Assembly (NCBI GenBank): GCA_964247055.1
Contig: OZ176060.1
Span: forward strand, 124,001-188,000
Direction of reading: 5' to 3'
Source of the DNA: Paragordius varius
Taxonomy: Eukaryota; Animalia; Nematomorpha
DNA: 64,000 nucleotides
This document shows positions 4,391 to 58,099 of this stretch, piece by piece. Each line of letters begins with the position of its first letter. Positions within the stretch are counted from its first letter, which is position 1. The notes below the pieces were generated by a model. The model saw only the letters and a program-made list of their open reading frames with translations, was not told the origin of the DNA and ran no database searches. The translations under genes and the position numbers were made by a program.

Positions 4391-4976
4391 TAGATCTTTC
4401 GCTGAAAAAACCACAAAAAATTAAAAAAAGATATTACTTCGGTATGTCCAAATATTGATTCCAATGATATAAGCATGAATGATATTAAAAATTTATTTAA
4501 TGATAACGTTAATAATGGAAAACCTATTGAATCTTCAAATTCTTCAAAATTGGGTAATAATTTTCGATGTATTCAATGTGATAAGATTTATAAGGATAAA
4601 TGCGGCTTGTCCAATCATATTCATTCGGTTCATAAACAAATTAAATATTTGTGCAAAATTTGTTCAAAAAAGTTTTCTAACAAAGGCAATCTTGGAAGGC
4701 ACATATATTCAGTTCATGAAAAAATTAAATATGAATGTCCGATTTGTAAAAATGACTTTACTGGAAAAGCAGATGTTGCAATACATATTCAATCTGTTCA
4801 CGAAAAAATTACATATAACTGTAAGATTTGTAAAAATGAATTTACTCAAAAATATCAATCTTGCAACACATATCCATGCTGTTCATGAGAAAATTAAACA
4901 TAAATGTCCGATTTGCAAAAAAGAATATACCGGAAAAGGCAATCTAACCAAGCATATAAAAAATGTATATAGTTGA
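4391..4976 (+). pseudogene. C2H2 zinc-finger gene, copy 1 (5'-truncated, 5 fingers, frameshifted)
   Basis: Five C-x2-C-x12-H-x4-H fingers spread over ORFs 4475-4888 and 4479-4976, with a +1 frameshift near 4849. The copy starts abruptly at DLSLKK, so the N-terminal region of the paralogs is missing. There is an extra A in the run at ~4423-4429. Confidence 0.85.
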
Positions 4977-7900
4977 ACACTTAATTCAACATATATAATA
5001 TTTAAAATGTTGCATTAAAAATATTGTTTAAAACCATTACGCAAATATGAGATTAATATTGTTTTATGAATACGTTTGCAAAATGCATTTTTAATAAAAT
5101 ATTTGGCATACTTTGACCGGACTGTTATCAAGTTTTTTTTGTAAATAAAAAATAAATTACAGTAAAAATCGATATTACACGGACAAGCAAAAGTATAACG
5201 AAAATATTTAACCATGATCACGATCGAAAAATAGAGTTTAATTAGAAACACAATAAATTATATATTTTACAAATAAAATTTATATTTTATAGGACAAATG
5301 TATTTTAATATTATGGTTGGTTTAAAAAAATTTCTCTTTTTATTTTTAAGATTTGTTCTTATAATTTTAAATATTACTGAAGATTACTCACTTGGCCAAT
5401 TAGCTATACAGTAGCTTATGATATAAAACAACTTTTGTCCATGAATTGATCAACAACTAATGTTGTAATTATGGGAAATTGTTTATTTTAAACCGTTTGT
5501 TGTTTCTGACACTAAAGTGAACAACATTAAAGTGGGTACTGTATATACCCTGAATTTTGTTTGAAAACAAATATATAGGGTTTAGGCGTGTCACGCTTTT
5601 TTCAAAGTAATTGTCAGCTTAAGTTTCAGCCGATTACTTATTAAACACATTTAAAGGCCGAGAACAAATAAACTAAAACTAATAGATATTTGGATAGAAA
5701 TAAATAAAATTAATAAAATAATTATTTATAATAAAATTTTTGGCGATATATGTGTATTTTATTTCTAAAAAGAATAGCATCAAAATAAAAATTAACAAAA
5801 AAAATAGATTTAACAACATATTATTAGGGTGCTTATTTGTAAATAAATTTAGAAATTAAAAATTAAAAATAAAATGCCCAGATATAATCCAGCCTACAAT
5901 GATATCCCATATAAAATTATATATATAAGGATAAACATATAGTATAAATAAAAATTTTTTTTCAAAACGTTGTACTTTCTTAAACATTTTAATATAACTC
6001 TTTATTTTAAATTTCAAAGTTTGAAATAGAAATGTAAATCGTAACGCAATGAAAAATTTTGAAAAAATATGGTTATCTTTGTAAAAAACTTTCTACCTTT
6101 TGTCCGTATTTTTAATTTTTATTTTATAAATAATATATTCTCTACGATCAAAATGCATAATTCGCTTTTGACAGCTGCTAAATGTTTATAAACGAAAGAT
6201 TTTAATTAAATATATATTTTCCATCCATGTTAAATTAATTTATCCGATTTCATAAATAGATGGCAAATATAGTGAATAAAAAAATTTTTATGGTATTATA
6301 TCAATATTAAGACTTTAATTGATAATTTTTAATATGCTTAATTATTGTATTAGTATCGCTCTTGAATTATTGTTAAAAAAATGTCATAAAACATTAATTT
6401 AATAAAATTTTAGGTAAATTTCCTTTTATCATCGTTTGTGAAGTCCTCATACTTCAACAAATTATTTCTAATTTTTGGCTAAAATTACACTTAATATAAA
6501 AAGAACACTTTTAATAGTAAGTAAATAATGTTATTGATTGAAAAAGGAAAATAGATTAAATATATTGTAATTGGTTAATATTAATCATTTAAATTTTTAA
6601 AATGTCCTCACCCGTACAAGATATGTTTTATAGAAAAAATATAAATGAAATTAGGGCATTATTTGTTGTAGTTTTTGTTTTAAACATGTTTAGATATTTT
6701 AAATTGGCGCATATTAGTGTTATGATTATTTATATTTAAAATAAACCAATCAATACAATGGTCCTTTGTTTTGTATTCTATTACATTTTAAAATTTATCT
6801 AAAGGTTTAATTTATTTTATAAGTTTTATAATAATAACAAGGAGAAAATTACCTTTCTGTTCCTGATGCCCAAATATAGGTTGAAACCTTACAGTCTATT
6901 CAAAAAAAATTCTATTTTCGTCTTTTTAAATATTTTAATATGATAAAATATGTTCGTTTAAAAGATTGTGCAATAGCATAAATATCTATACCATATACTC
7001 AAAATATTATTAATTTAAAAATAAAAATGTTAATTATTTATTTATGTTTAAATATTTATTGAAAGAAATAACATTAATTTGTTATAATTAGTTTCTAAAA
7101 AACCAAAATATTTTTCATACATATAAACTTTTATTAGGTCAATTATTAATCTAACATAATATATCTACATTTCAAGAGAGTTTTGCCTTAATAATTTAAA
7201 AATAGATTATACATAATAAAACATAAAGAAAATTGGCATATTCTTAACACCGTTTCATATTTTGTAAAAGAAATTACTACTAAAAAGATCATCATAAAAC
7301 CATAAAAACGAATACATCTTTTTAGGTAAAAATTTATATATATTTATTTGATGTAATAAAATTATTAATTTAAAAAGTAATAACCGTTGACCTTGCACTG
7401 AACTAATTCTCAACTTCAGCTATAATAAAATCAAATTTTTAACCAAATTTAAATTAGCTAATTTTATAATTTAGGATACGTAAAATACAAATGTGCATTT
7501 TAGGGTGGAATATATTGTGATTTTTATGTAAAACGCGTTATCTTTCACTTTAGCAAGTGAATAGTCAAATTATTTAATAATGTGTGCGTATATAATTAAA
7601 AATATAATAGAAATCGCTGAAAGTTAAAACAATTATATTATTCTTTATATAATTTTTTTCGTTAATCTATAACATTATTTACCTTGTTTTTAAACAGTTT
7701 TAATATAATTTCAAGAAAAATCATTTAATGAAAAATTTTACTAATGAAGATTAAAGAAAGTTTACTTATTAAATTATAGCTGTATATAACATATCTATTA
7801 AAATTATTCAAAAGCCAATTTAAATGTAAAAAAAATAACAATTAAATATTAACTTTTTAAATTAAATATTTATTTCAATATATTTGCCGTGTATTTATAA

Positions 7901-8039
7901 AATCGTATAAATCCATTTAACAATTGAAAAACTTTCTAAATTATTAATATTTTTTAAAAGAAATATCAAGTGTTTCCACAATTGTTCATATGACATCCGG
8001 ATACATTTTCAACCGAAATTCCAAATGTTAACGATCTCT

Positions 8040-8520
8040 GATTAGTTTTCTTTAGACATTCAAATCTACGCTTTAAGAAAATGGTAGAGTATTTAAGTTT
8101 ATTCAACATATTATCAAATGGAGATAAAATATGGAAATGTATTGTTTATGTATTAAGAGATTTCTCCATTATCATCGACATTTTTAAAAGCAACATTTCG
8201 GATTACGTCAATAAAAATAATGCTTTAAATGACTGTTATTTAATTGTATTTGAAATATTATTAACATATTACATCAAAAAACAAGAATAAAAAGCAATAG
8301 TAGATCTTTTAGTTGTGGATATAAATAATCTTTCGTCAGTTAAATAGTTATAGCTGTAGTAAAATTGTCTTGATCTTTATGAAACAGCACGACTTAACCA
8401 TTTTGCATCTGTATTAACTCTAATTTTAAAACTTCGGCGCAACACTCTTTTCTTGATGACTATCTTAAACCATTTATTACTTTGATCATTTAAAATCCGT
8501 CGCAAGGTGTACAGTTAATT
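8040..8520 (-). pseudogene. Possible highly decayed Tc1/mariner-type transposase remnant
   Basis: One minus frame reads LYTLRRILNDQSNKWFKIVIKKRVL...*...NYLTDERLF, resembling the TIRRIL ... FSDEKLF region. A downstream frame has LPFS*SVDLNV, resembling SPDLN. Spacing is too short and stops are present. Confidence 0.3.
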
Positions 8521-21601: not shown

Positions 21602-22805
21602 TATATTAAAAGAATGACCTACGGGTATATTTATAATAATGACACCATAAAATAATATTTCATTAGTTAATTAACCATTATAATAAAGTTTCATTTAACT
21701 TCACAAAAAAAGTTTTAACTATAACATAATTCACGAGAATTTATATTATATAAACCTGTTCATAGCCAAAAATTAAATAATATAATATGGACTAAACAGG
21801 ATTTTATTGGCAAAGATTAAATTAGCTTTGTTAACTTATACCAATTTTTTCATTATTAAGTCCTACAATTGGTCATTAGAAACTATAAATTAAAGTATCA
21901 TATATAAAAAATGTCAATGTACATGCCATCTATTTAGATCGTATGAATTCTTTTATTAGCGATAACAATTATCAACCAACAATAGCGAGTAGCATGTTGA
22001 TTGCACAAAATATATTATTTATTTTTTACAAAAAATATAAGATAATCTAAAGAATAGATTATACCTGGATACTTTTAAATTTTATTTTTGTTTCTATATA
22101 TTGATTTTATAAAAGTATAGTTATGCACAATTTTGAAAAATATTTTTTAATTTACATGCTATCCTATCTAAATACCTTTCTCGCCAAATTTTTTTTAAAT
22201 TATTTAAATATCTTAGAATTTCTATACGAATATTTTATAATTTTAGTTTATTAGTGTTTTACGGTTTTTATGAAAAAGACTCATCTTAACCTTTTGACAA
22301 TTACATTTGCCGATTTAACCGTAGAGCCTATTTGTTTTAAGTCAGAAAACTTAGAATATATACAATTCCACTTTAATGTTAGACACTTTACATTATTTTT
22401 AGACAATTGGCAATACAATAATGTGTGTGAGTAAAAATCAATCGGACTGAGATAAACATTTTTTAGTGTAGTTACAACATTAAATAAATCTATTAAATTA
22501 TGGACGAAATTTTTTTTATATCATATGTATTGTATTGCTAATTGGCCAACAATAAAGTGAGTATTGTAAATTATTTTTGCTGTAAGAATGCTAATCTAAA
22601 ATAAACTTCAGATACCAATAAAATAGCATGGCAAATATCTTATGATCTAAAAAATCAAAAAATAGTTTGCAAAGCGTCTCCATAAAATGAATTTAAATAT
22701 ATTTATTTCTAAAAGGGATCGAAACGGCTAATATATTTACAAATGATATTCAATGTACATTTTAAAAATGCCTATTAAGATTGTTTTTATTTGTATATTA
22801 AATTT

Positions 22806-23634
22806 TCAAATCTTACATTTATATGTAATTTTTTCGTGAACAGCATGAATATGTGTTGCAACATCTCCTCTTCGGGTAAACTCTTTTTTACAAATCGGAC
22901 ATTCATATTTAGTTTTTTTATGAACACCATGAATATGTCTTGCAAGATGGCCGTTTTGAGTAAATTCTGTTTTGCAAATCGGACATTCATGCTTTATTTT
23001 CTCATGAACTGAATAAATGTGCAGAGTAAGAGAGCTTTTTTGAGAAAACAGCTTTGAACAAATTTTGCACGGATATTTAACTTGTTCATGAACGGAACGA
23101 ATATGTTGGGTCAAGCCTCTTTTATACATGTATATCTTATCACATTGAATACATCGATAATTATTGGCCAATTTTGAAAAGTTTAAAGATTTAATAGGTT
23201 TTGTTTTGTTACTATCAAGCTTGTTAATATCATTCAAGCTTATGCCATTGGAATCAACATTTGAAGATACCGAGCTTATATCTTTAACATTTTTTGGTGA
23301 TTTTTTCAGAGAAAGATCTAAAGGTTCTGTCTGTTCTCCTACCAAATCAATATTTAGGGTATCTTTGTTGGTTTTGGTATCATTTTTATTTTCATTTAAA
23401 TATTATTTTGAGTATTTTCGCTTTTATGTTCCCTTAAATAACAAAGGTTATGGAAAGAAGCCTTCAAAATTCTTCGTAAATCATCGTTTGTAAAGTCTTC
23501 ATTTTCCAATAAATTAAGAAATGAGGCCGGTTTAGATGGATCCTCAATATACGTTTCTTGTTGATTTTTAAGTTCTACTTTATAAAGCTTAGTATCAAGA
23601 TCACACCAAAGTTTGTAAGTCGAGTCGCCAAAAT
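22806..23634 (-). pseudogene. C2H2 zinc-finger gene, copy 2 (N-terminal region + PLDLS + 4 fingers + decayed 5th)
   Basis: After an acceptor-like CTAACAAATTTTTTAG the frame reads DFGDSTYKLWCDLDTKLYKVELKN...LCYLREHKSENTQNN. A 1-bp deletion near 23400 shifts it into ORF 22806-23345 (GEQTEPLDLSLKK...4 fingers). The last finger is broken by TGA. Confidence 0.85.
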
Positions 23635-26600
23635 CTAAAAAAATTTGTTAGAAATGTAATTAAAAAGTCAAATTATTAATAATGAAATAAGTTTTGAAAG
23701 CCCAAGACATAAAACTTAGTGTACAGGTTTATTATTGTCACTAAAATTACAACCGCAAACATTAAATAATTACACTAATGATTATAATTGATAGATAAAT
23801 GTAAAAGTATAAAGAAAAATATTTTTTTATGATATAAAACTATACTTTATTAAAAGGAAAACTTTTCTACATAAACTATTATATTAAATATGATATCTAT
23901 ATTAACAATTATATCTTTATGGACTATTTTTTAAATCAAATCCATGAGTGTTATATGTATATATAAATATTCAAAGTATGGCTGTCAATTGGATTTATTA
24001 TTATTTTTTTTAAATAAATATTATACAATATTATAAGGTGGCCCTAAAGTCGCTTATAAAGCTCGATTAGTGAAATATTTTAATTTATACAAAGGACACT
24101 AAAAAAGATAAAAAACTATTATAAGGAAAGATTCATTGAGATTTTGAAATCATAAAATTAATTTGTTATATATGTATAATTCAGCTAAAATTATATAAAT
24201 TTATTATGATATTTCGATTACTTTAAGTAATCTTGGTCAAACGTAAAAATAAAATTAAAATATATACTAAAATTTAAATTAATTATTTTTCTAAAAAATG
24301 TTGCAAACAAAATAAAACTAAATTATAATTATTATTATTATTATAATTATCAATTGATCCAATTTATAAAATATTAGCAGTTATTTGTCTAATAAAACGT
24401 TATCAATTTTAATAACAGGTGATGTTATATATTGATACATTAAAATGGATTGATTTCATTTTTACGATTTAAATATATATACATTTAATTTGATAACATA
24501 AATCATTCAAAATTAAAAAATATTTTATATAAATTAAAAATTAAAATTTATAATCTTAAAAATAAGCTAAAAATATTTTCTAAATTTCGGTTAATAAATA
24601 TAAATTATAGCTAAGAATTTAAAAAGATAATTAATATTAAATTAAATTACAAAAAAATATTCCATTAGTTAAAGAATTTAATTTAATTAATTTACAATTT
24701 TTTCTAAAAATTAAAGTTATAAATAATAAATATTAAAAATAATAATTGATACAAAAATAATTTAAAATAAAAAAAAATAAAATATTTTACAAAATTTTAA
24801 AAACATATACCCATTTTTCAAATAATTTGAATATTTTATCGAATAAATAAAATGTTTTATTATTTAAAATTATTATATTATTAATTTATTTAAATTATCT
24901 GAATAATTTTAATAAATAGATTATTTATTTTGCTAATTGTCAATTTTTTATTAATGATTTTTTCATAAATAAAAGTATTAAAATATTTTAAATTCTTAAT
25001 TACTGGAATCGCAAAATAAAGTGTATGATATATTTCAATTATTATTTAATTCGCTCCCCCCTTTTTTTAAAAAAATATTTAATTAAATAAATTCTTTCAA
25101 ATTATATATTTTCAAGTAAAAATGGTTGAACTCGAATAAATTGAATATATTATAATTTAATTTTAATTTAATAAATAATATTGAGAAAATATTTTGTAAA
25201 AATATTTGATTCTAATATATATTTACAAGGGCTGATGGTAGTCTATATAAAATTATCGAAATCTAATAATATATCTTGTTAATACAGTAAAAATATAATC
25301 ATACAAACAAAACTTTAAAACAAAAAATTTTTTGGACAAATTTACCATACTTTTCAACAATGGTTTTTGAAGTACAAACTAAATATGTTTTTAAGATATG
25401 ATAAAATATTTTCGGTTAGACATTTTTACCTCAAAATTTTGATTATAAAGTTAGATTGGGTAATTAATCGTAATATAGAATTTATATTTATTTTAATTTA
25501 AAGGCGACAAAATAATCGAAATTTCGAGGTGATGTATTTAATATATAGTCAATCCGGTTATAGCATTCATTTTTTGTGTAATTTTTATTTTCTTTTATTT
25601 TTGTAACGTCGGATATAATCGCAATATTTATTATATGTGTAGTATTTATATTTTATTGGCCATATTTTGGGTACCCCTTTTAACATTAGAAAACATATTT
25701 CTCACCATAATTCAGTTTACGGCATTCTTGTTGTTTTAAGTCATGGCAATAGTATAAATATAAAAAAATAAGAAGTTAAAGATTTATTACTGTTTTTAAA
25801 GGCTAAAAATTATAGGTTCATTTTTGGAAAAGCTATGTTTTTGATTGAGAGCTAAGAGATAACCTATAATTAAATAACATTCTATTGCACCTATATTAGT
25901 TTTAAAGTACCAATAAAAAAAATATGGATTTATATAAATTAAATTTTCCAAATGTGAAATCAACAATCTAACATTATTACGGAAAACTCACATGAATAAT
26001 TTAATTTACTTAAATTGGAAAGAGTATATTATGATAATAATTTGATACAATATAACCTTAAGTTTATATATAAGCGATTTTTTCATACAATATTGCTAGA
26101 GCCAAAAAGAGACAATCAAGAGGGGCAGAAAATAACTACATTTCTTGGTTAATGAATTAATATTTAAATTACAGTATTTGGATTTTTACAATTAAAAATA
26201 TATAAGGACAAATGTTTTTTTAAAAGATTACCTATGTACTTTTATAAGCTTGATATGTTTTAAAATTCATGATTATTATAAACTACAAAGTAGGAAATAG
26301 AGATTTATATGGGTTAAACAATCAAATATGTATTATACAATTGCACAATTATATAATAGGGGAGAATAATGTTTAAAAAAATTATGGTTATTTTTTATAA
26401 AAAAATATTTGTTATATTGATTAATTTTTATTTTTGGTTTAAATAGATGGCTTATTTACTCTCATTTGTTACGTCTTATGTAATATAATCTTTTAGTAAC
26501 TCTATAATACAGTTATTATCAGGTGCATATATTTTTAAATGATATCATTTTTTGATATGTTATAAATTGTTAAATATTATTGGGTCCTTACATTTGCTCT

Positions 26601-33359: not shown

Positions 33360-34177
33360 TGTTCAATTATGTAATTTTTAATATGCCTGGCAAGACTGCC
33401 TTTTTCGTTATAATCCTTAAGTCAAATCGGACACTTATGTTAAATTTTCTTATGAATAGCATGAATGTGTGTTGCAAGATGGCATTTTTGAGTGAAATAA
33501 GTTTTACAAATCGGACATTCATGTTTAATTTTCTCATGAACTGAATATATGTGCCTTTCAAGATTGCCTTTGTTAGAAAACATTTTTGAACAAATTTTGC
33601 ACAAATATTTAATTTGTACATGATCCGAATGAATATGATTGGTCAAGCCGCTTTTATCCTTATAAATCTTATCACATTGAATACATCGAAAATTATTACC
33701 CAATTTTGAAGAGTTTAAAGATTTAATAGGTTTTGAATTATTATTATTATCATTAAATAAATTGTTAATATTATTCAAGCTTATGTCATTGGAAGCAACA
33801 TTTGAACATACCGATGTAATATCTTTTATAATTTTTGGTGCGCGAAAGATCTAAAGGTTCCGTTTGTTCTCCTACCAAATTAAATATCAAGGAATTTTTG
33901 TTTGTTTTGTTGGTAACATTTTGAATTTTATTATCTAAATTATTATTTTGTAGAGTATTTTCGCTTTTATGTTCCCTTAAATAACAAAGGTTATAGAAAG
34001 AAGCGTTCAAAATTCTCCGTAAATCATAGTTTAAGAAATCTTCATTTTCCAATAAATTAATAAAGGATGCCGGTTTAGATGGATCTTCAATATAGGTTTC
34101 TTGTTGATTTTTGAGTTCTACTTTATAAAGCTTAGTATCGAGATCACACCAAAGTTTGTAAGTCGAGTCGCCGAAAT
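33360..34177 (-). pseudogene. C2H2 zinc-finger gene, copy 3 (intact N-terminal region to PLDLS, then frameshift; 3 fingers + broken 4th)
   Basis: The frame is open from the acceptor-like AG at 34178 through ...GEQTEPLDLS. A small deletion at ~33840 shifts the frame. Fingers lie in ORF 33440-33778; the last has TAA and TGA where paralogs have K and C. Confidence 0.85.
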
Positions 34178-34357
34178 CTAAAAAAAATTTGTTAAAAATG
34201 TAATTAAAAAGTCACATTATTAATAATGAAATATGTTAACAGCCCAACAAAATGGTTTAAAATCAAGTTAATAGACATAAATATTAATGATTATATAATT
34301 AATGATTAACTTTGCAAATATGAACTACTAAAAAATGAAATGTTTTCTTTATACAGT

Positions 34358-36555
34358 TGTTGTTATAAGCTAGTCATATACTGATTCTGGCTTTCTCATA
34401 GATTAGTGTTCTCCATTTTAGGCGATCCTGTGTTACTCTCAACAGTTGATGAAAGGTTAGATTTGTTATTGATTTGAGCACATCGATCCACCGCTTTTTG
34501 GGTCGGCCCCTTCTGCGGGTGCCATCTACCAACCCAAAGAGTATGATTTTTTCTAGCGAGTCGGATCGCAGGATGTGACCCAGATATTTTAGCTGTTTAA
34601 AGGTTATTAAATCGTAAAGTAAAAATTCGGGTTTAATGAATTTGAGTATGTAAGAATTGGAGATGTGGGCTTTCCAGGAGATTCTCAATATTTTTCGAAA
34701 GCACCACATTTGAAAAGAGTTTATGCGGGCTTTGTCAATGGAATTGCATATCCATGATTCGGACCCATAGATTGCCACGGGGTATATCATCGCCTTCAGG
34801 ATGGCAAGTTTAGTTGGGAGACTTATGACCGATGAGTTCCAAACTTTGGACAGTTTACCCATAGTAGCACGTCCCAATGCTAGTCGTGCTCGTATGTCGG
34901 GGTCCGAGCTACCGTCGGATGCAATTATGGAGCCTAGGTATTTACAGTGATCGGTTAGTTCGATGGGGGAGTTGTTGATTGTAAATGGTAGTTTTGGTGC
35001 GTTTAGGATCATAATTTTAGATTTAGCTGGGTTCAGCTTAAGACCCATCAAACTTGCTTCAATGGTAAGATTATTTAAAAGATAGGTCATGTCCGTGTGG
35101 GATTCTGACAAGAGAATGGTGTCATCGGCGTACCGGAGATTGCAAATAGTAAGACCACCGATCCGTGCCCCAATATGTTGTGGAAAGTTACAATTGCGTA
35201 TTAATGTTTCTGTGTATAAGTTAAATAAGAGGGGAGAAAGGACACATCCTTGTCTCACACCTCTGAGAATAGGAAACCAGTCGGTGGGACCGAATTGAGT
35301 TTTAATGGCAGCTGTTTGTCCTGAATACAGCGATTGAAGTAGGAGTATTATGTGCGAGGACACTCCTGAGGATCGTAATATTCTCCATAGGCAGTCGTGG
35401 TTGACTGTATCAAATGCCATACTGAAGTCTAAAAAGCAGCAATATAGACTTTTCCCAAATTCATTGTATCTTCGAATTATTGTATTAAGATTAACTATAT
35501 GATTGGTAGTGTTTCTCTTTGCTCTAAAGCCAGCCTGCACCTCGGATATTTCATAGTCCAACGAGGATGAGATTCTTTTCAGTATAATCTTGAGAAGAAT
35601 GATGGCGATCATTCTATAGTTCTGACAAAGATGGGGATTTCCCTTTTTAAAAAAGGGTAGGAGAAAAGATTTGGTCCAATCATCCGGCCAAATACAGGTT
35701 TGAAACACTTTTTGTAAAAGATCAGTTAAGAAATAGAGGGGGATTGTGTGAAGAATTTTTATTGGAATATCATTGTAACCTAAGGAGTTGGAGGATGAAA
35801 ATTGTTTTAAGGCGTATTGAACTTCATCAGGTAAAATTGGGGGATCTAGTTCTGAAACTTTAAGGAATGTGCTAATGGATGAATGAGGACTAGAGTCGAC
35901 ATGATAAAGAGAAGTACCGAATTCTTCCCAACGTTTGATAATTTCCTTTTTATTTGTTAATATTACATTATCCGTGTTGCTTATGCTCCCCAGATTTTTG
36001 GAGTTGTGAGGAACAAGTAAATGTAGTTTTTGGTATATGTTCTGGCCTTTGGCGTGAGCCAGTTCTAATTCTTTGCAAATAGCTAGGTAGTGAAGATTGA
36101 TATCAATCTTGGATTGTATCTTGAATTGAGTATTTAATGTGCGGTAATCAGTAATGTTGTTGTTTATTTTAGCCAATCTGCGTTTATTGGCCAAGACAAT
36201 GGATTCATTTGAAAGAAATGGATTATTAGGATGTTTTTGTTGAAGTGGAAAGTGCTTGGGTATTAGTTCGTTGATGGCAGTCAAGGTCTGATGCCAATGG
36301 TTGTTTACGTTCAGATTATTAGTGTTGATATTACTTAGGGAAGTATTCAGTTTGAGTATAAATTCACTTGTAACATTGGAAAAGTCGAAGCGGTTTTTAG
36401 TTTTATTGTGCGGTAATTTAGTTCCTAACTTAAATTTAAGTTTAATAGCAAGAAGTTGATGATCGGAGCCTATTACGACTCCTGGGAAAGTTTTCGCTCC
36501 TATAATGAATTTGAGCCATTTTTGTTGGATGAGGATAAAGTCAATTTGTGAACGG
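34358..36555 (-). mobile_element. 5'-truncated RTE-clade LINE
   Basis: Contains the end of an APE endonuclease (QIDFILI..IGSDHQLL), an RT (QAGFR, LDFSMAFDTV, GVRQGCVLSPLLFNLY, LRYADD, KYLGS) and the RTE C-terminus (GTRRRGRPKKRWID..QDRLKW). A short CAA-type tail follows the stop; GC is elevated. Confidence 0.93.
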
Positions 36556-36556
36556 G
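34374..36556 (-). CDS. Reverse transcriptase ORF of the RTE LINE (partial, lacks most of the endonuclease)
   Basis: Uninterrupted frame of ~727 codons. The first 13 aa of the listed 740-aa ORF come from the MITE TIR, not the LINE. Confidence 0.8.
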
Positions 36557-39238
36557 TAAAAATTAAAATTATACGGACAAAACATAATAAAAACAAATAT
36601 TATTCCAAAAGGCAATCATATTTTTTTAAACCTTAATTTATTGATTGTTTTAGTAATATATACATATCTAATTAACACTTTGCAATATAAAAAAATGAAT
36701 ATTTAAAAAATATGGTTGTTTTTTGAATTTTTACGTTTTGTCCATAGTTTAATTTCAGTTTTTAAAGTATAAGGTTGCCTAAGGTCGCTTATAAAGCTGG
36801 ATTGATATTAATAAAACACTTGAAATGACAAAACTATTATATGGAAGATTAATTTAAATTTTAGAAATTAAACAAACATTTTTTTCAAAAAAGAGGTGTT
36901 GTAAAAATAAAACACAATTATGATTATTATATTAATAGATCCAATTTATATAATTTTACCAGTTATTTAAAACGTTAATGAATTTTAACATTAATTAATT
37001 TGATATAATTTACTGTTTATTGGGTGTATATGAATATAATTATTACAATTTACAAATACATATTTGAAATTAAAAAATTTTACTTTAAGAATAAATTAAA
37101 TAATAACATATAATTTAAAAAATTACAATTCCTAAAAAATAATCTTGAAATTTTTTAAACTTCTAATAAAATAAAATATGATAAGTTTAATTATATTGAA
37201 ACACAAAAAATATATTATTAATAAAAGAATTTATTTGAAATATTATATATTTATTTTAAGAAATTTGAGTTTTGAAAAATAATTAAAATAATTAATTGGA
37301 TATATAAAATATTTTTAATAAAATTATAGAAATATAAAATAATTATAAAAATATTAATTTAATAATTAAATATAGAAATATTTTATAATAATTATAAAAA
37401 TAAATTTAATAATTTTAAAAATATAAATAAATGAAAAGCAGACAAAGCAGACAATTAAAAAAACCCTTAAAAAATGCAATCGTTTGTCGTTTTATTTTAT
37501 ATTTTAATTAAATTTTTCAGTTATTATTTAGTTTCAATTTTAAAATTAAATAATATATTTATAACTAATAAATACCATATATTTACTTGATAGTTTCCAT
37601 TTACTTTGAAGAACTTTATAATTTTCAGATAAACTTAAACTCTATATTATTAATAATTTAAAATTGATAAATAATTTAATTCTTTATTAAAAAATAATTT
37701 TTCCTAAGAAAAATATTTTAAATTATATATAATAATATTGTTTTAATTCATTTTAAAAATTGTGATATCATACCTTATTAAAAAGCAAGCAGTCAGTTTT
37801 TCGACATAAATCAGCCAAAAATGGGCAAAGTTTATTTAAAGTTTATTCTTTTTTGATAAAAAATCAAACGATTACTTTAAACCAGGGGTGGGTCGGGTTT
37901 GGGTTCTGAGACTTTCTGTGCGGCCCGTGATAATAAAATGTTACCCGTTTTTTATAATATATTTATCTCTAGGGTATAAAAACGGTAGATATATTAAAAA
38001 ATTTTTTTTATATAATTTAATAGTGATATAGATTACGAATGGTTCAGAATTTCGAATGGAAAAGTTAGTTTGCTTGCAAATTTTTGGGTTGTAAAAATTT
38101 ATATCTAACTTGAAAAAAAGATATTTTAATCGAAGTTCTGCCGTGATATAAATTTAGCATCATCAAATTATGCAAAAAAAGTGTTTTTATATATCTTAAA
38201 ACACTTTTATACAGTTTTCCATACAATAATAGTTCAAGCAGGATTCAACAATACTTTGCTAAAATAAATTTTTTTTAAAAAGGGTGGAATTTTTATAAAT
38301 ATTTTTAGAATAAAAATGTATATTTAAATTTTTTATCGCGCAATCTCGGCATTTTTGCATTTATTTTAGGGGAACTAGCCCATTTTAGAAGAGCGAAATA
38401 ATTAGAGACCATCTGAACCCACTTCTAAAAATTTATATCACGTTCACAACTTCGATTATAAAAAGTTATATATGATTTTTTTTACGATCCAACTAAATTG
38501 ATAGCAAAATAACTTTTCCAATTGAAATTCCGAACCGTTTGAAATGTTTATCACTATTAAATTATATATAAAACGGTTTATTAATATATCTTAAACCGTT
38601 CATAAAATTATTTAAAAAACGAGAAAGAATTTTAGGACAAATTATATCAAATAACAAACAAACTCTTATGATCCAAAGTTTAGCATGTACGCAAAATAGA
38701 AAATGTAAGAGCCGTAAACCTACATCAATTAAATATATGGCATATTTTTTAATATTGGGTATCCATCTAATATTTAGGGGTAAAAATAAATAACTGTGTT
38801 TATTTAAAATATTTATTTTTTGCAAGGTATAAATATTTACCTTTTTTTCCTTTTATAAAGTTAATAAGCATAAGATATTAATCATATTATATTACCAATC
38901 TATTACCGATATGTCTGTTTAAGTCACCTCAGATATATAAATTTGCTAAATATAAAAAATTTCTAATAATTTAATCATCTAAACTAATTAAAATATAAAC
39001 TCTTGAAAATTATAGAATTAAATTTATATAAAATAAAAAAATAACTTTTTAAATTTAATTTTCCAATTTTCAATATATTATAAGATTATAAATATTTTTT
39101 ACGATGATTATAATATTTATTCAAAGCTAAAATATAGTTTTTTACACTTATTTGCTAAAGACGTTTAAAAAAACTATTAGTTTAGTAAAAAAATATCATA
39201 TTTTCAAAAAGGCTGTTTTAATCAAGTATAAGTTTAAA

Positions 39239-43900: not shown

Positions 43901-44109
43901 ATAGCGGTTATCAAACTTTTGTAGATATTTAAATTTTAAAAAAAGACATTTATAATAAAAAAAATAATCTTTCAAACCTATACTATAATTTATTTAATTC
44001 AATTGTAAATTAAATGGTTTTACAAATTCACATATATATCGTATTTTGCGATTTGAAACCTAGAGAATCAATAATCATAATTTAAAAAGTACAGGGGGTT
44101 AAAATAGCT

Positions 44110-44690
44110 TTGAAGAGAAAATTCATTTTTATTAATTGGACATTCATATAAAACTGTTCATGAACAGATTGAATATGTATGGTAAGATTTTTTGAGAAAA
44201 ATCTTTATTACGAATCGGGCAGGAATACTTAAATTGTTCATAAACACAATGTTGAAAGATGTCCTTTTTGAGTAACTTTCATTTTACATTTTGGGCATTC
44301 ATGTTTATTTTTTTTGATAAAGAAATTTGATGTGCGTTGGATATATAACTTGTTAATGAAACGAACGAACATGTGTGAATTAAACAAGTTTGTCCTTATA
44401 AATTATCATATTGAGTGCAGCGATATTAATCCTTCATTTTTTAAATGTTTAAGGACTCAATACGCTTTGATTTTGCCATTTTAATGTTATCATCTATAAT
44501 ATATTCATGCTTATATCATTGAAATCAATATCCTTTTTAAGGTCCAAAGGTTGTGTCTGCTCTCGCCTCCAAATCAATTATCAGGAGATTATTGTTGAAT
44601 TTTCAGTAACGTTTTGTATTTTTTTGCTGTTATGCTATGTGTAAAATTGTTTGTTATGCATACTTTTATTTCCTTTAAATAACAAAGTTT
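44110..44690 (-). pseudogene. C2H2 zinc-finger gene, copy 4 (heavily decayed)
   Basis: The minus strand shows LCYLKE, EQTQPLDLKK, KHECPKCK, SCPIRNKDFSQK and HIQSVHEQ in shifting frames, with many stops. Confidence 0.75.
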
Positions 44691-47600
44691 TATAATAATC
44701 ATTGGTTACGTCGGTATACGTATAATTAATAAAATTAAGATCATATTTTTTATAAATAAATAAAGTAATATAATTTTGACACATTTTTCAAGTAAAACGA
44801 TTATAAAACTATTTAAGTTTTTTTAATAATAGCAGAATCGTTACTGCATTATTTGGATGGCATATTCTATATATTTATAAAATTACTATAAGTTCTTGGC
44901 ATATACTTATCTTACTTATAATTAAATAAACATTTATTCATCATAAATGAGTTAATAGGCAATTTTTTTACTTTTATGGAGGCAATAAATATTTTATATA
45001 TATCATATATATAAAAATAATTACCTGAACCTTAACACTTGTGATCTCCAACAAAACTTAAATTTTTGACTATAAATAAATATTTCTTTACTAATCAACC
45101 AAAAATTTCAATTTAATTATTTTAAAACCTTCCTAAAATCTTAATTTGACTGTATACGCCCCCTCAAGTAAGTTATGAGCACTCAGTAAAAACTTATTCT
45201 CTAATCTCCTGTAATAATATATTAAAAAGCGCATATATATATATAGGTATAAAATTCCCATTTGTAAAAATTGTAATTATACGGACAAATAAATGACAAA
45301 TATATTTTCAAATTAATTATTTTACATATTCTTTATCGTATTTTGGGGTAAAATAGGGTAAAATAAATCGTTAATACCGCAATTATATTATATATGTAAC
45401 TATACAGTTTATCAGTTTTTTGTATTTTGGAAACCCACACGATGAGTTATAAAAAACTATATTAAATTTACACAGTATGGTAGACTTTTTGAAAGATATT
45501 TGGTTATTACCTTTTATCTTTTTTAGTTTCTATTTTGACTATTACCATCATATTTTGTAATATAATTGATAAAATTATTAATAAAAATGACACACAATTA
45601 TATGAAAATTATTTATAATAAATTATAAACCAATTTAATATTTGAAAAAATATATGTTAATATTTACAAGATTTTCCAGTTTAATAAATTTTAGAAATTA
45701 TAATGAACCATCTATTTTTATTTTTTACATCTAAATTTGAATATGTTTTTTTTAAATATTCAATAGTGCATTGTGTCTTTAATAACTGACTAATCCGTAA
45801 ACTTATAATATTGATTAGTAAAATTATAGAACTGAATATTAATTAATTAATATTAAAATTTTAGATTTTATAAACTGTTCATTTTAGCTTTTCATTTTTT
45901 TGTAGACGATATTTTGGGGGGCATTTTATAATAAGCTTTGTAAATAGACTAGTTTTAAGAGATGTTTTGCTTATTATAATTATTAATCTCTCTAGGTATT
46001 AGATAAAAAAAATAGAATTCACAGTAAACCTCTAGAAATTCAGATATCCCCAAAACACGATTGAAATAAACAGTATAAATTAAATATTGGTAAATTGTAA
46101 TTTAGAAACTATCGAGGTTAATTTATATTTTTCGATTTGCGTGTATTCGCAGTTTAAAAAATTTAAAAAATGGCGGCGAAAATGTGGGTTTATTTTGCAA
46201 TTATAGAAAGGCATTTTTTAAATATTAGCCCAGTTAAAATATTAGTTAGGTACAATATTAAATGCGAGTATGAATTTAAACCAAAAATTTATGAAATATT
46301 AAAGAATATTCATTTATAGCCAAAAATTAAAAATACCTAGGAGACTTTAATAGCCACATTGGCGATAGTGTGGTATTATACATTTGAAAAATATATAATG
46401 ATTATTATAAACTTTATGGATATAAGAAAGTTGCTATTTTTAACGCTGTAAAGAACAAATTTTTAGTTAGATAAATTAATACATATTTAGTCTAGGGATT
46501 TTTAAACTGGTATAAACTCATTTAAAAATACGCCATCTATATAATTAATTATAAAATTACCGGCAGAAATTGTTAAAAGAAAGATGCTAAATTAATCTTT
46601 CAATGGTTTGCTCAAAATATTTGTCTCAGAAATGTTACGTTTGTTTTTTATATTAACTATAAGCTCTTCATTTATTTACATAAACTAGGATGATGTTTAT
46701 ATAAGCGCAACATATATACGAATATTTTCAGCTTATAAAGTTATAACTTCAAACAGCTTCCCGATTCTTTTATATTGACTTTTATCACATTTTTAATATA
46801 TACAGAAAAATCAGAATTTATAAATTCTAATATTAAAATTTTTAAAATTTAAAATTTTATAATTATAGTGTAATTAAAAACTGTAAAGAAGGTCATAATT
46901 TTTATCAAACGTAAAATCTGATTGTTTTTATTAGTATATATTTAAGGTAATGTTTTAACTATAGAGCAATGTTCGTTTACTCTACCCTTTTTAGATTGGA
47001 GGTGATATTCTGACCTTTAACAATAAATGATATAATAAACGTTTTTTATTCCTTTTACACCAGCTTCGAGGCCGGCGTCCTTATATTGTAATAGAAAAAT
47101 TCAAATTTTGATAATTTAAAAATCAATATTATCTATAAATATATCAACTAAAAATAAACAAAAAATGTAAATGTCTTTTAGATGAACAATGTCTGATTTG
47201 GTATATACTCTAATCCATAGAAGAAATAGGCTCTTCGGTTTAATTGGTAAGCCACGCTTTTTCAATGTAATAGTTAGTTTATAGCTGGTTTTAACCCTTT
47301 AAAACTAAGAAATAAAATATAATATATTTGCATAGAAATATAATAATAAAATAAATTAAAAAATATTTTGGTTAAAGTGTTATATTTTAGATAGGATACC
47401 ATAAAAATTAATAAATATTTAACCAAAATGTATATAAAATGACTAAAAATAAGAAAAGGAAACCCGATCTATTCAAAGGTGCTTTTTAAAAAATACATGG
47501 ACACAAGAAATAAAAATATTAAAATGATATAAATCTAGATAACAGAAATATCTCATATTTTATGGAAATATAAGTAAATATATAACATATTGTGCAATCA

Positions 47601-52715: not shown

Positions 52716-54639
52716 TGATAGGAAAATGTATCAAAATTAGGTGCTTTAGGTTTACCTTACAAGTGGTATAAGAAAGTTATTTATACTTTTGTGGTGCGTG
52801 CTCAATATCAGTAAATGGCAAAGCACATTTTGTAATAATTTTTTTTTGGTAAAAACTATAAACTTCATTTCTAAAAAATATCATTAAAATATATCATAAA
52901 CTAAAAAAATTTTAAAATTAGGCACAGATAGTCCCAAATTTTTACGCTTTCTAAAATGGGCTATCCCCCTAATATAAAGGAAAAATGCCGAGATTGCGCG
53001 ATAATAATTTAAATATATGTTAAATTTTTAATAATAAAAATTATTATAAATGCAAAATTTTTCAAAAATCTAATATTTAGCACATCAAATTATTTTTGAG
53101 GTATAAAGGAAACAGTATAAAAGTATTTTAAGATATTATAAAAACACTATTTTCTACATAATTCGATGATGTTAAACATTTCTATCATGGCAGAACTTTG
53201 ATTAAAAGATCTGTTTATATTCAAGTTAAATATAAATTTTTAAAATCCCAGGAATTCGAAGCAAACAAACTTTTTATATTAAGATTCTCTACCTTTCGAT
53301 ATAGTATCACTAATTATAGAGATAATCTATTATTAATATATCATAAAGCGTTTTAAACCTCCATAAAATTATTTTAAGAAACGTGTAACAATTTTCGGAC
53401 AAATTATATCAAATAAGAAACAAACCTATAATCCAAAAGCATGTATTTTATTGAAAATAGCAGAGCTGTATACCCTTACATTAATTAAATAGATGGCCTA
53501 TTTTTACATAATTTGCATTGCAATTATTGATTTGTGTTAAAATAAATATTCTTAGCAAGGTATAAATATTGATATTTTTTTAGTTTTATGAAATATAAGC
53601 ATAACATAATTATCATTATATATATATATATATATAAATCTTTATAAATACCGTAAATAAATTTAGCAATGGCGAAGGCCTGTTTTGAATTTTTATCAAT
53701 ATAATGAAAACAGTTTTACACGCGATTTATATGTGGGTCTTATTAAAAAGTTTTGTTCATATCATTTGTAGATATCCGTGCATCTTTATAAATTCCTAAA
53801 TAAATTTAGCAATGATGAAAAGCTTAAGGTCTGGAAGGCTTTAGCCAAGAAATGATCAATATTTAAATATTTATAAAATATACTTATTTATTGTGTAAAA
53901 ATAAACTATTAATAAATTATGTTAAATAAATTTGTTTCTCCGATCTACTCCTGTTTGATGGCTATTCGATATAAGAGCTGTCTGATCTTCTGATATAAAC
54001 TTTGCTAACTCATTTTCGTCATTTATGGTTTTATTGAAATATATATTACTAAATTCAAACCAAATTTAAAAATAATCGATAGTATTCCTGATTATTAGCA
54101 TTTAAATGGTTTCAAGTAAGGAAAATTATATGATGACATATTCTAAATTCTTGAAAAAACATATCTGTTATCTGTAGTTATTAAAACGATTTCTTAAATT
54201 TTCAGTTGAACTTGCTTAGAAACTTAATTATCTGACTAATATTTTTTGCCTGAATATAAAAAATAAGGCACGAAAACATTATAACCATTAGTAAGCATTT
54301 GCCCATAAAATATTTTTTGATACATGTCACAAAATTTCCATAACCTACCATATACGCATATTAAATTTACTTTATTTAGGCTAATACAGTTTTGAGATTC
54401 CAAAAATTCTATCTAGTTCTCGAGATATTGGCTTTTGTAATAACCTTAATCCTGAAAAAACCAGGCTCAAAAATTCCTCCATCTCAACAGGATGAATATG
54501 GCTCATTCACCACTTTTAATAATCCATGTGAATGAGCTCAACTCGCTTATTCACATGGTTCTAAGTCAATTCTTGGTCTGTAAAGGTTTATTGCATCATT
54601 TATAAATTATTTTTTATAAAATAAAACATATATTTTAAA

Positions 54640-55504
54640 TTTCGGCGTCGACTTACAAACTTTGGTAAAGTAAAACTCAAAAATCCAACAAGAAACGTAT
54701 ATTGATGATCCATCTAAACCGGCCTCATTTCTTAATTTATTGGAAAATGAAGATTTTACAAACGATGATTTACGGAGAATTCTGAACGCTTCTTTCGATA
54801 ACCTTTGTTATTAAAGGGAACATAAAAGTGCAAATACTCTGCAAAATAATAATTCAAATGATGAAACGAAATCAACAAAATCCCTTGATATTTGATTTGG
54901 TAGGAGAACAGACGGAACCTTTAGATCTTTATCAGAAAAAACCACCAAAAATTATAAAAAAAATTACTTCGGTGTGCGACAGTATTGATTCTAATGATAT
55001 AAGCGTGAAGGATGTTAACAAGCTAATTGATGATAACAATAATAATGCAAACCTATTGAATCTTTAAACTCTTCAAAATTTGGCAATAACTATCAATGTA
55101 TTCAATGTAATAAAATTTATAAGGATAAACATGTTTTAGCCAGACATATTCGTTCTGTTCATGAACAAATTAAATATCCATGCAAAATTTGTAAATATGA
55201 GTTTTCTCAAAAAGAAAATCTTGCTAGGCACATTAAATCGGTTCATGAGAAAATTAAACATGAATGTTCGATTTGTAAAAAACAATTTACTCAAAAAAGA
55301 GATGTTGCATCACACATTCAATCCGTTCATGAACAAGTTAAATATCCTTGTCCGATTTGTAAAAAAGATTTTTCTAGAAAAAGATATCTCACCAAACACA
55401 TTCAATCTGTTCATGAACAAATTAAACATGAATGTCCGATTTGTAAAAATGAATATACTGGAAAAGGCAATCTTAGCAGGCATATTAAAAATGTACATGA
55501 TTGA
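54640..55504 (+). pseudogene. C2H2 zinc-finger gene, copy 5 (N-terminus disrupted, five intact fingers)
   Basis: There is a ~23-bp deletion at ~54670, a TTA>TAA change at ~54810 and a 1-bp loss at ~55050. Frame 55046-55504 is open, contains no Met and encodes five complete fingers ending ...LSRHIKNVHD*. The motif reads PLDLY. Confidence 0.88.
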
Positions 55505-55693
55505 ACACTCAACATATATAAGTTTTTATATGTAGCATTAAATATAGTTTTGTTAAAAATACATTTCGTAAATAACATATACTGAGATTCATATTATTTT
55601 ATGAAGATATTTTGCAAAATGCATCGTTAATAAAATAAATGCTATTGGATCGCTTTGTTTTAGAGTTTTCTTTTGTAGATAAAAAATGAATTA

Positions 55694-55941
55694 CAGTAAA
55701 CGAAATTATACCGACAAAATGTAAAAATATAAAGACAATTATTTCTTACAAATAACCATAACTATAATATCTTGATTTTCTTAATTGACTGATTGTTTTA
55801 CACAGCAGATTATAAAGTTAAATTCGTAACACAATCAATTATGTTTTTTCCAATTCGAAAATAATTATAATAAAAAATTTAATGTATGATTGTTTTAGTT
55901 TTTTTTATTTTTACGTTTTGTCCGTATATTTTCAATTACTG
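55694..55941. mobile_element. CAGT-family MITE downstream of ZNF copy 5
   Basis: TA-CAGTAAACGAAATTATACCGACAAAATG ... TTTTGTCCGTATATTTTCAATTACTG-TA. Confidence 0.85.
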
Positions 55942-56951
55942 TACAGTACTCACTTTGATTTGGCCTTTTTTGCATTAAAAATAATTAACTGCTTATCAAA
56001 AAGGTATGATATCAGAAATGCAAGAATGATTTAAAAAAAATAAATTTATATAATTAAAAAAAGGTTTTTTTTTATGAAACATAATTATCTTTAATATATA
56101 AAATAAATTATCAATAAAAACTGATAAAATTGTTAATAAATATGGGTTGGTATTTTTAAAATAACAATAGTTATTGGAAATTAACTATTTTTAAATGTAA
56201 TATAAAGTATTATTTTTAATTTTTAAAAATTAAAATTTTTAAACCATTAAAATAATAGAAAAAGTATAAAAAGAAACGACAGACGATTTCTTTTTTAAAC
56301 GGTTGTTATTAATTGTCTGCTTTTTATTTATTCGAAAAAATATTCAAATTTATTTGGAAAATGGGTATAATTTTTATTTTTAATTTAAATATACATTATA
56401 TGATATTTATAATTATTTCATGTAATTTTTTTATTTTTATTTATAATTTTGTTTTAAATTATTTGTATAAAAAACAAAAAATTATTTTGATATTATTATT
56501 CAATACTTGAATTTTAGAAAATAAATAAATATTAGAAAATTATTGTTTGTAAATCTTAAAAATTAAATTTATAATCCAATGTTTTAGCAATTAATCCTTG
56601 TTAAACATCATATTACTTGTATATAAAAATATATAAAGGTTTTTATTTAATAATTGGTAAATTATGAATTGGATCTAATATTAATAACATGAATATATGT
56701 TTTATTTTCTTTAATACATTTTTTTAATATATTTAATATCAACGCTTTTGAGAAAAATTATAAATTGTTTTAACATTTTAAATAATTAACTTCCATATAA
56801 TATTGTTAAATTAGTATTCATTGTGTTAATAAAATATTTTACCAATCCACCTTTATAAGCGACTTTATGTAACCTTACATTAATAATGGATTTTCTTATT
56901 TTATGTTCAGTTAGTCTAGTTAGAAGTTTATCCAAAGTTTCTCAAATATTA

Positions 56952-57171
56952 CATTAAAATTGAAAGGACAAAACGTAATAATACAAAAACAATTATTTTT
57001 TTCTAAAACTTGATTCAACTGACTTTTTTAAAAAAATATAATATAGAGATGTGTATTCGCAACGGATTCAGTTATATACTTTCAAAATTAATTTAATTGA
57101 TCATTAATGTTTATAAAAGTATGGCTTTTATGTATTTTTACTTTTTGTCCGTATAATTTTAATTTTTACTG
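56952..57171. mobile_element. CAGT-family MITE upstream of ZNF copy 6
   Basis: Decayed left TIR CATTAAAATTGAAAGGACAAAACG; right TIR TTTTGTCCGTATAATTTTAATTTTTACTG-TA. Confidence 0.75.
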
Positions 57172-57293
57172 TATTTAATCAGTAATATTGAACTTACGTC
57201 ATTTAACTTGATTTTAAACCATTTTCTTGGGCTGTGTAGATTTTTCATCATTTATAAATTATTTTTAATTACAATTCTAACAAATTTGTTTAG

Positions 57294-58099
57294 ATTATGG
57301 CGATTCGACCTACAAACTTTGGTGTGATCTCGATACTAAGCTTTATAAAGTAGAACTCAAAAATCAACAAGAAACGTATATTGATAATCCATCTAAACCG
57401 GCCTCATTTCTTCATTTATTGGAAAATGAAGATTTTACAAACGATGATTTACGAATAATTCTGAACGCTTCTTTCCATAACCTTTGTTATTTAAGGGAAA
57501 ACAAAATCGAAAATACTCTACAAAATAATAATTTAAATGATAATACCGAAACCGCCAAAGATACCCTAATTATTGATTTGGTAGGATAACAGATGGAACC
57601 TTTAAATCTTTCTCTGAAAAAATCACCAAAAATTATAAAACAAATTACTTCGGTATGCCCAAATATAGATTCCAATGATATAAGCCTAAATGATATTAAC
57701 AATCTATTTAATGATAACAATAATAATACAAAACCTATTGAGTCCTTAAACACTCAAAAATTGGAGAATGATAATCGATGTATTCACTGTGATAAAATTT
57801 ATATGTATAAAAGCAACCTGACTAAACATATTCTTTCGGTTCATGAACAAATTAAATATCCTTGCAAGATTTGTTCAAAGTTGTTTTCTGACAAAAGCTC
57901 TCGTACTCATTACATTTATTGAATTCATGAAAAAATTAAACACGAATGTCCGATTTGTAAAAAAAATTTTTCTAGAAAATGCCATCTTGCTAGGCACATT
58001 CATTCAGTTCATGAGAAAATTAAACATGAATGTCCGATTTGCAAAAAGGAATATACCGAAAAAAGCAGTATTGCCAGGCATAAAAATGTACATAATTGA
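57294..58099 (+). pseudogene. C2H2 zinc-finger gene, copy 6 (full length, two nonsense codons, 4 fingers)
   Basis: A single frame DYGDSTYKLWCDL...IDLVG*QMEPLNLSLKK..., with TAA at 57587 (GAA in paralogs) and TGA at 57920. It ends HKNVHN* at 58099. Confidence 0.88.

Follow-up and report, generated by a model that had tools for sequence, protein, structure and literature searches.

The window analysed here is a 64,000-nucleotide stretch of the genome of the nematomorph Paragordius varius (assembly GCA_964247055.1, contig OZ176060.1, positions 124,001 to 188,000 of the forward strand). It carries six copies of a unit encoding tandem C2H2 zinc fingers preceded by a PLDLS motif, which we designate c1 to c6 in window order. 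Our preferred reading, to which we assign a probability of roughly 0.6, is that these copies form a dying local cluster of a large lineage-specific family of PLDLS zinc-finger proteins, and that they diversified under selection before they were pseudogenized. It is carried by four kinds of observation, namely the anatomy of the unit, the mode of its duplication, the pattern of selection on its codons and the decay of the copies. The units had been pointed out in an earlier note, made from the letters of the window and a list of their open reading frames (ORFs), as candidate CtBP-recruiting repressors analogous to the KRAB-ZNF and ZAD-ZNF families.

Anatomy of the zinc-finger unit

A six-frame scan of the window returned 19 C2H2 finger matches of the form C-x2-C-x12-H-x4-H. 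Five of the six units (c1, c2, c3, c5 and c6) are clear, and c4 is badly decayed. The likeness of the copies is far beyond chance, because their DNA identity, calculated by segment, amounts to 73-94% over about 950 bp. The earlier note had described six paralogs with a common N-terminal region; all six can be recovered, c4 as a remnant, but the N-terminal region is kept only in c2, c3, c5 and c6, with a trace in c4.

Homology among c2, c3, c5 and c6 begins about 100 bp before the reading frame. Just ahead of the frame lies the sequence TTCTAACAAA-T(7-8)-AG, i.e. a branch-point-like CTAAC followed by a pyrimidine run and AG, which is conserved in c2, c3 and c6, while in c5 the acceptor AG is mutated to AA (54637-54638). 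The frame that follows the acceptor has no in-frame ATG, and the junction codon is split after its first base (phase-1 acceptor). The unit, opening at an acceptor and lacking a start codon, is therefore an internal or last exon.

From its 5' end the exon encodes an N-terminal region of about 72 residues (DFGDSTYKLWCDLDTKLYKVELKNQQETYIEDPSKPASF...NLCYLREHK), an Asn-rich linker with the island LVGEQTEPLDLSLKK, and four to five fingers. The fingers show H-x4-H spacing and a 28-residue period, and are joined by the linkers HEKIK, HEQIK or HEQVK; this bears out the description of four to five H-x4-H fingers with EKIK/EQIK linkers given in the earlier note. The number of fingers varies, as had also been noted: five are present in c1, c2 and c5, and four in c3 and c6, because in the latter two a common in-frame 84-bp deletion fuses two fingers. 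The motif, which had been taken as common to all copies, is less uniform: PLDLSLKK in c2 and PLDLS in c3 agree with the claim, but c6 has PLNLSLKK and the forms in c1, c4 and c5 are decayed (LDLSLKK in c1, which is cut inside the motif, and PLDLY in c5).

A Pfam scan of the unit reported C2H2 fingers only (PF00096, E-value 2.8e-17, above the cut-off). When the five-finger array of c5 was compared with the PDB, DNA-reading arrays came out on top, namely CTCF (E-value 6e-21), ZNF568, Aart and PRDM9. The 28-residue period and the Pfam zf-C2H2 match together place the unit in the class of tandem DNA-reading C2H2 arrays. An AlphaFold model of the N-terminal region, built from three sequences, comprises a beta hairpin and two helices with a predicted local distance difference test (pLDDT) score of 52. 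The PLDLS stretch is disordered in it, so that a P-x-D-L-S motif is found in a low-confidence, unstructured part of the model, i.e. in the kind of non-globular stretch that is typical of the PXDLS class.

Searches with the N-terminal region yielded no relatives. Its pieces matched no Pfam family at E-values up to 10, a profile of three copies retrieved only two matches among 1.84 billion representative proteins (both of them unrelated repeat proteins), and a feature search of the ESM Atlas gave no usable match. By the measure of these searches the N-terminal region is an orphan, in line with the lineage-specific family proposed in the earlier note. A word search with the 179-aa frame of c2 produced a single match, a 182-aa protein on a 661-bp Tara Oceans scaffold, and no other relative came from the databases. 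The protein carries four H-x4-H fingers with an "HIxSVHExxK" scaffold (40-46% identity) and QTEPLDF ahead of the fingers, and lacks both the PXDLS motif and the N-terminal region. To judge from this match, the H-x4-H "SVHE" type of scaffold is not unique to this genome, the family itself having been shown here only.

Two further pieces of sequence resemble the family: a seventh tiny fragment (Table 1) and a weak scrap, NLLKYEDFTNDD, at 6380-6463 on the minus strand (E-value 0.4).

Selection on contact residues, scaffold and motif

The helix positions expected to contact DNA (-1, +2, +3 and +6) differ strongly between the copies, and every string listed in the earlier note was reproduced. For finger 1 the contact residues are DCGN, YRGQ, DSGN, DHVR and YSNK, for finger 2 NGNR, QSSL, NGNR and QENR, and for finger 3 GADI, QGHR, QC.., QRDS and RC...

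Codons were mapped from a MAFFT alignment of the units and sorted into classes. By the pooled Nei-Gojobori method the contact codons have a proportion of nonsynonymous differences (pN) of 0.455 and of synonymous differences (pS) of 0.262, with a ratio of nonsynonymous to synonymous substitution (dN/dS, omega) of 2.16; the scaffold has a ratio of 0.39, the zinc ligands of 0.04, the N-terminal region of 0.23 and the linker of 0.58. A maximum-likelihood fixed-site codon model with one omega per codon class and shared branch lengths gave 2.6 for contacts, 0.56 for other helix positions, 0.32 for the scaffold, 0.43 for the linker and 0.125 for the N-terminal region. Fixing the contact omega at 1 in this whole-unit model costs 18 units of twice the log-likelihood difference (2dlnL). 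With the fingers alone the contact omega is 1.7-1.8 and 2dlnL 3.9-5.6 (three best topologies). If the contact class is additionally given a free rate, which guards against comparison of non-orthologous fingers, omega rises to 4.9-5.8 and 2dlnL to 6.6-7.9. When the 10,626 possible sets of four non-ligand positions are ranked by variability without recourse to any model, the set -1, +2, +3, +6 comes first; position +5 and the residue preceding the conserved aromatic are variable as well. Within the linker, constraint is strongest on the PLDLS island (pN 0.063 vs 0.179 for the remaining linker).

These results support the conclusion that change at the contact residues reached or exceeded the neutral rate, with purifying selection on the remainder of the unit. 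They substantiate the rapid diversification of helices that the earlier note had suspected: the contact omega is 1.7-2.6, that of the scaffold 0.2-0.3 and that of the N-terminal region 0.13. A lack of excess change at helix positions over neutral decay, which the earlier note had named as speaking against its proposal, is thus not what the sequences show.

The same data bear on the possibility that the family is real but its KRAB-like interpretation is wrong, i.e. that the contacts are simply free of constraint or the fingers have RNA or protein as their ligand, that PLDLS has some other role, and that there was no CtBP-based arms race. Such an explanation would be compatible with the modest excess of omega over 1 for fingers alone, with the variability outside the canonical contact set, and with the H-x4-H spacing and non-TGEKP linkers; moreover, by a rough estimate, a chance PXDLS would occur in a few percent of 300-residue proteins. 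The canonical contact set at the top of the ranking nevertheless points to DNA reading, omega is 4.9-5.8 when the contacts have a free rate, and the motif occurs in its full form, PLDLSLKK with trailing basic residues, at the place where every copy that retains it shows the strongest constraint in the linker. On balance we regard a family of this other kind as unlikely.

Decay of the copies

All six copies are broken by frameshifts, stop codons or truncations. In c1 everything upstream of LDLS is lost, and there are +1 insertions at about 4423 and about 4856, the latter breaking finger 4. Copy c2 has a +5 frameshift in the linker (about 23401), and its finger 5 is broken by a -1 frameshift at 22807 and stops. 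The lesions of c3 comprise an 8-bp deletion at 33842, right after PLDLS, the stops TAA 33442 and TGA 33424, and a -1 frameshift at 33380. In c5 the loss of the acceptor is accompanied by deletions of 2 and 23 bp in the N-terminal region, TAA 54812 and four 1-bp indels. Copy c6 keeps a single frame throughout, but contains TAA 57587 and TGA 57920, and its last finger is shortened to H-x3-H by a 3-bp deletion; c4 has many stops and frameshifts. An alternative genetic code of the ciliate type, with TAA and TAG read as Gln, was considered for these stops and rejected in view of the in-frame TGA codons of c3 and c6, the frameshifts elsewhere, and a 740-aa transposon ORF in the window that is open in the standard code.

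As the N-terminal region and the zinc ligands keep an omega of 0.04-0.13, we infer that most of the divergence arose under selection and that the pseudogene phase has been short relative to the time under selection. The transposon-saturated locus and the death phase proposed in the earlier note thus both stand: the window is rich in transposons (see below) and no copy has escaped damage.

Family size

The c5-c6 stretch is present in only two sequencing runs, from one sample of one study, neither of which is recorded as RNA. Four runs were compared with it at 80% likeness. In the DNA run the summed depth over the exon is 5,600-53,000, as opposed to about 220-450 for exactly matching unique contigs, which suggests that there are tens to more than 100 related copies, summed depth not being a copy number.

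Duplication of the units and their relation to transposons

Counted from the first finger, c3 and c6 stay collinear between about -1.8 kb and +2.2 kb, provided that a reverse transcriptase (RT) element inserted ahead of c3 is left out of the comparison. Blocks in both flanks of c2 also occur around c3 and c6, and c1 has 1.3 kb of downstream flank in common with c3. Judged from these flanks, the copies are segmental duplicates of ~4-kb units with mismatched edges. Their identity is mosaic: c1 and c3 are 94.6% identical in fingers 1 and 2, yet the 84-bp deletion is common to c3 and c6. The N-terminal region is 90-94% identical among the copies, as compared with about 72% in the flanks. Since identity is mosaic and the N-terminal region is more alike than the flanks, the sequences suggest that the copies underwent gene conversion or recombination.

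Carriage of the unit by a transposon, be it of Pack-MITE, Helitron-like or other type, with spread by transposition, would account for the tens to more than 100 copies indicated by sequencing depth and for their presence on both strands. It would also fit the position of c3 and c6 between copies of one very abundant miniature inverted-repeat transposable element (MITE), the inverted copies of a ~1.2-kb repeat around c1, the candidate status of the ATG-bearing exon, and the absence of RNA matches in the probable RNA contig sets discussed below. Against it, the edges of homology vary from pair to pair, and we found no shared termini and no terminal repeats at the ends of the units. The c3-c6 homology passes both flanking MITEs, as in a segmental duplication, on which ground a Pack-MITE was rejected specifically. 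Furthermore, the unit includes neither a transposase nor an RT (that at 34.4-36.6 kb inserted later, and next to c3 alone), its beginning falls within an intron, and an N-terminal region under purifying selection together with diversified contacts is the pattern of a host ZNF family. Because of the differing edges, the run past the MITEs and the lack of common termini or terminal repeats, transposon cargo, which the earlier note had named as an outcome that would speak against its proposal, was rejected as the principal explanation and appears improbable.

A candidate first exon

A conserved block of ~55 nucleotides, which ends in AAAATGG/GTATA (the slash marks the putative exon end), precedes c2 and c6 by about 0.9-1.2 kb, and similarity falls off right after it. 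An ATG plus one base followed by the donor GT would give exactly the phase of the acceptor, and the predicted protein would start M-D-F-G-D. This ATGG/GT block is a candidate first exon only, and with the sequence ahead of it a candidate promoter; its donor is weak and the block is lost in c3. A comparison by blastp of ORFs against ORFs in the 5 kb upstream of c2, c3, c5 and c6 on the same strand revealed no conserved coding exon, only repeat-derived matches. A longer shared block, 1.2-1.7 kb upstream, was rejected as a coding exon, as it is AT-rich and non-coding apart from the short ATGG/GT candidate. Orphan copies of the ATGG/GT block occur at 39911-39951 and 29092-29111, both on the plus strand, with no zinc-finger exon downstream on that strand. 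The block copy at 29.1 kb is about 90% identical to that of c6 over ~230 nucleotides upstream, but ends before the ATG.

It seems very improbable that the units serve as alternative 3' exons for a single locus or a small number of loci, spliced (or, from the opposite strand, trans-spliced) to shared exons in the manner of lola or mod(mdg4). Each unit does begin at a conserved phase-1 3' splice site without a start codon, the array spans tens of kb and uses both strands, and no conserved coding exon was found ahead of individual copies. However, the N-terminal region recurs in each unit, where a shared exon would encode it a single time, an ATGG/GT block in the right phase lies ~1 kb upstream of both c2 and c6, all units in the window are broken, and no RNA evidence was found in the probable RNA contig sets.

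Setting of the cluster

The window is very AT-rich, with 17-30% G+C per 2-kb bin and a single exceptional bin of 37% over a retrotransposon ORF. Scans for tRNA genes and against Rfam gave no match in the window. Self-comparison showed that much of the sequence is repeated; the locus is transposon-rich.

A young-looking non-LTR retrotransposon (LTR, long terminal repeat) is inserted ahead of c3, some 60-130 bp from its acceptor, and splits the flank common to c3 and c6. Its endonuclease domain is reduced to a tail at the start of the ORF, the first residues of which are read through from a MITE. The very abundant MITE itself consists of two inverted arms of ~85 nucleotides; at least 14 copies are present in the window, strongly enriched in the zinc-finger cluster. 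Where it flanks c5-c6 it reaches a summed depth of 1.1-1.5 million in the DNA run, in which unique contigs stand at about 300, and its copy number in the genome is probably in the thousands. The middle-repetitive element of ~1.2 kb lies downstream of c3 and c6, and inverted copies flank c1 on both sides, one of them (3235-4390) directly abutting the point at which c1 is truncated; c1 is rearranged at this repeat.

Table 1. Positions of the zinc-finger units, candidate first exons and mobile elements in the window
Feature	Position	Strand	Remarks
C-x2-C-x12-H-x4-H fingers	4568-4801; 22836-23153; 33452-33685; 55097-55498; 57779-58093	+; -; -; +; +	six-frame scan
PLDLS	23310-23324; 33843-33857	-; -	six-frame scan
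PLNLS	57599-57613	+	six-frame scan
c1	4391..4976	+	pseudogene; 5 fingers; 5' end cut inside PLDLS codons
c2	22753..23707	-	pseudogene; acceptor AG 23636-23635, exon start 23634; N-terminal region, PLDLSLKK, four intact fingers
c3	33369..34247	-	pseudogene; acceptor AG 34179-34178; N-terminal region in frame with PLDLS
c4	44100..44736	-	old decayed remnant; trace of N-terminal region, EQTQPLDL, at least 3 finger remnants
c5	54571..55501	+	pseudogene; motif PLDLY 54918-54932; five fingers in one frame 55097-55498
c6	57225..58099	+	least broken; acceptor AG 57289-57290, exon start 57291; PLNLSLKK 57599-57613; 4 fingers
Seventh tiny fragment, LVGEQTDPLD	8804-8836	-	E-value about 0.1-0.3; 9/10 residues match
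Candidate exon 1 of c2	24809..24846	-	ATG 24814-24812, donor GT 24810-24809; phase fits phase-1 acceptor
Candidate exon 1 of c6	56328..56366	+	ATG 56361-56363, donor GT 56365-56366; 925 nt before acceptor
Non-LTR retrotransposon, young-looking	34310..36640	-	740-aa RT ORF at 34374-36596; RVT_1 E-value 3e-31; 37% vs 22% G+C in background
RT fragment (RT tail)	40234-40785	+	Pfam
LTR-type integrase core fragment	61503-62015	+	Pfam; rve, E-value 4e-10
Retroelement ORF fragment	2428-2745	-	CxxC...HxxxC pattern like zinc-binding tail of non-LTR RTs; no Pfam match
MITE copies	58282-58543; 57040-57176; 55713-55943; 21343-21596; 36556-36639; at least 9 more		two inverted arms of ~85 nt
~1.2-kb middle-repetitive element	3235-4390 (inverted); 58776-60041; 31512-32666; 19744-20353		downstream of c3 and c6; inverted next to c1

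Proposed history of the family

The gene, as we reconstruct it, would consist of one large exon of ~270 codons after an intron, probably preceded by a very small first exon. Its copies would have arisen by segmental duplication of ~4-kb pieces; fingers would have been exchanged by unequal crossing-over, probably with gene conversion as well. As long as the genes worked, selection would have held the PLDLS island, the zinc ligands and the N-terminal region, while altering the DNA-reading residues at -1, +2, +3 and +6 at the neutral rate or faster. All six copies in the window have since turned into pseudogenes. Intact proteins of the family would be expected to bind DNA sequence-specifically, dock CtBP via PLDLS and silence their targets; that these targets are transposons, as in the KRAB and FiNZ families, is suggested only by analogy.

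Several points weigh against our reading of the cluster as part of a once functional repressor family. The window contains no intact copy. The upstream coding exon is only a candidate. The case for an omega above 1 at the contacts is of moderate strength, because it comes from 20 codons in five recombining paralogues, and with fingers alone its significance is moderate. Given the low confidence of its model, the N-terminal region may be incomplete or may not be an independent fold, and docking to CtBP, plausible as it is, is read from a motif of five residues. Finally, a search at 80% likeness or more of three probable RNA contig sets for c5 and c6 came back empty, even for the N-terminal region that is 90-94% conserved; the sets bear the same species label, but their RNA status is guessed and their contigs drop rare transcripts. 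As contigs cannot prove absence, this missing signal is weak negative evidence. Of the intact or expressed members whose lack the earlier note had named as speaking against its proposal, the window holds none intact, and the search for transcripts of c5 and c6 tells mildly against them.

The most far-reaching version of the proposal, a lineage-made counterpart of KRAB zinc-finger proteins, with about a hundred zinc-finger genes silencing transposons through CtBP by means of PLDLS and a new region of ~72 residues, is tentative and rather doubtful at present. If it is true, CtBP docking would bring in histone-modifying enzymes and constitute a third independent effector route, beside KRAB-TRIM28 and the still-unknown partner of FiNZ. 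As the presumed hook is a well-understood short motif with a conserved partner, CtBP, the effector question is open to a simple binding assay. What the window contributes to this picture is the anatomy of the gene (a large exon after an intron), the mode of duplication, a quantified pattern of selection and a view of the death of a cluster.

Comparison with known zinc-finger families

Fast-evolving ZNF families whose effector parts are peculiar to a lineage are regarded as a general response of animals to transposons, and to our knowledge KRAB is the only such family with a known corepressor route so far. Our searches of the literature for an expansion of ZNF genes in hairworms, or of ZNF genes with a CtBP motif, retrieved no description, and in particular no expanded, diversifying family built on PXDLS.

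Drosophila lola and mod(mdg4) have arrays of alternative 3' exons, in which the finger units each start at a 3' splice site and some lie on the opposite strand. The hairworm units likewise begin at 3' splice sites on both strands, but each has its own N-terminal region and probably its own first exon, and no shared upstream exons were seen. The ZAD-ZNF family of insects is similar in being a lineage-specific clustered C2H2 expansion with a family-specific N-terminal region; the region found here gives no Pfam ZAD match and lacks the pair of C-x2-C motifs. The unit as a whole has no Pfam match to ZAD, BTB or SCAN domains, nor did the 5 kb ahead of it on its own strand reveal an exon with such a domain.

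Single-copy zinc-finger repressors that recruit CtBP are familiar from the fly (Kruppel, Knirps and Snail). PXDLS is the motif by which DNA-binding factors such as E1A and ZEB1 recruit CtBP, ZEB1 by way of PXDLS-like motifs (PMC6068344), and ZNF366 and ZNF516 are reported to act with CtBP (PMC1693901, PMC5612949). With ZEB1, ZNF366 and ZNF516 the hairworm units have in common a PXDLS-type motif in a disordered stretch beside a C2H2 array; those are conserved single genes with fixed targets, whereas here the motif belongs to a multi-copy, rapidly diversifying family.

Closest in behaviour is the FiNZ-ZNF family of cyprinid fish, which has a 28-residue orphan N-terminal sequence on its own exon and positive selection on base contacts, and whose genes are expressed at genome activation and repress LTR elements (PMC10547256). 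Both families are lineage-specific and parallel to KRAB-ZNF, both have an orphan N-terminal sequence and selection on contact residues, and the cofactor is in both cases at most inferred. The likeness is one of description, and there are differences: in the hairworm a ~72-residue region, linker and fingers reside on one exon, and the family is known from genomic sequence, whereas expression at genome activation and repression of LTR elements have been shown for FiNZ.

With the KRAB-ZNF family of tetrapods the cluster shares birth-and-death clusters, an N-terminal effector part and a tandem C2H2 array on one large exon, a conserved scaffold with diversifying contacts, changes in finger number via unequal crossing-over, transposon surroundings and many pseudogenes. 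It differs in having four to five fingers instead of the 10-15 of KRAB proteins, H-x4-H spacing, and EKIK-type linkers in place of TGEKP; moreover, no KRAB domain was detected in the N-terminal pieces (Pfam, E-values up to 10), and the presumed hook is PLDLS for CtBP instead of KRAB for TRIM28. Set beside these systems, the hairworm cluster appears to belong to a familiar type of fast-evolving, repressor-like family, from the other members of which it would differ in its effector hook, PLDLS.

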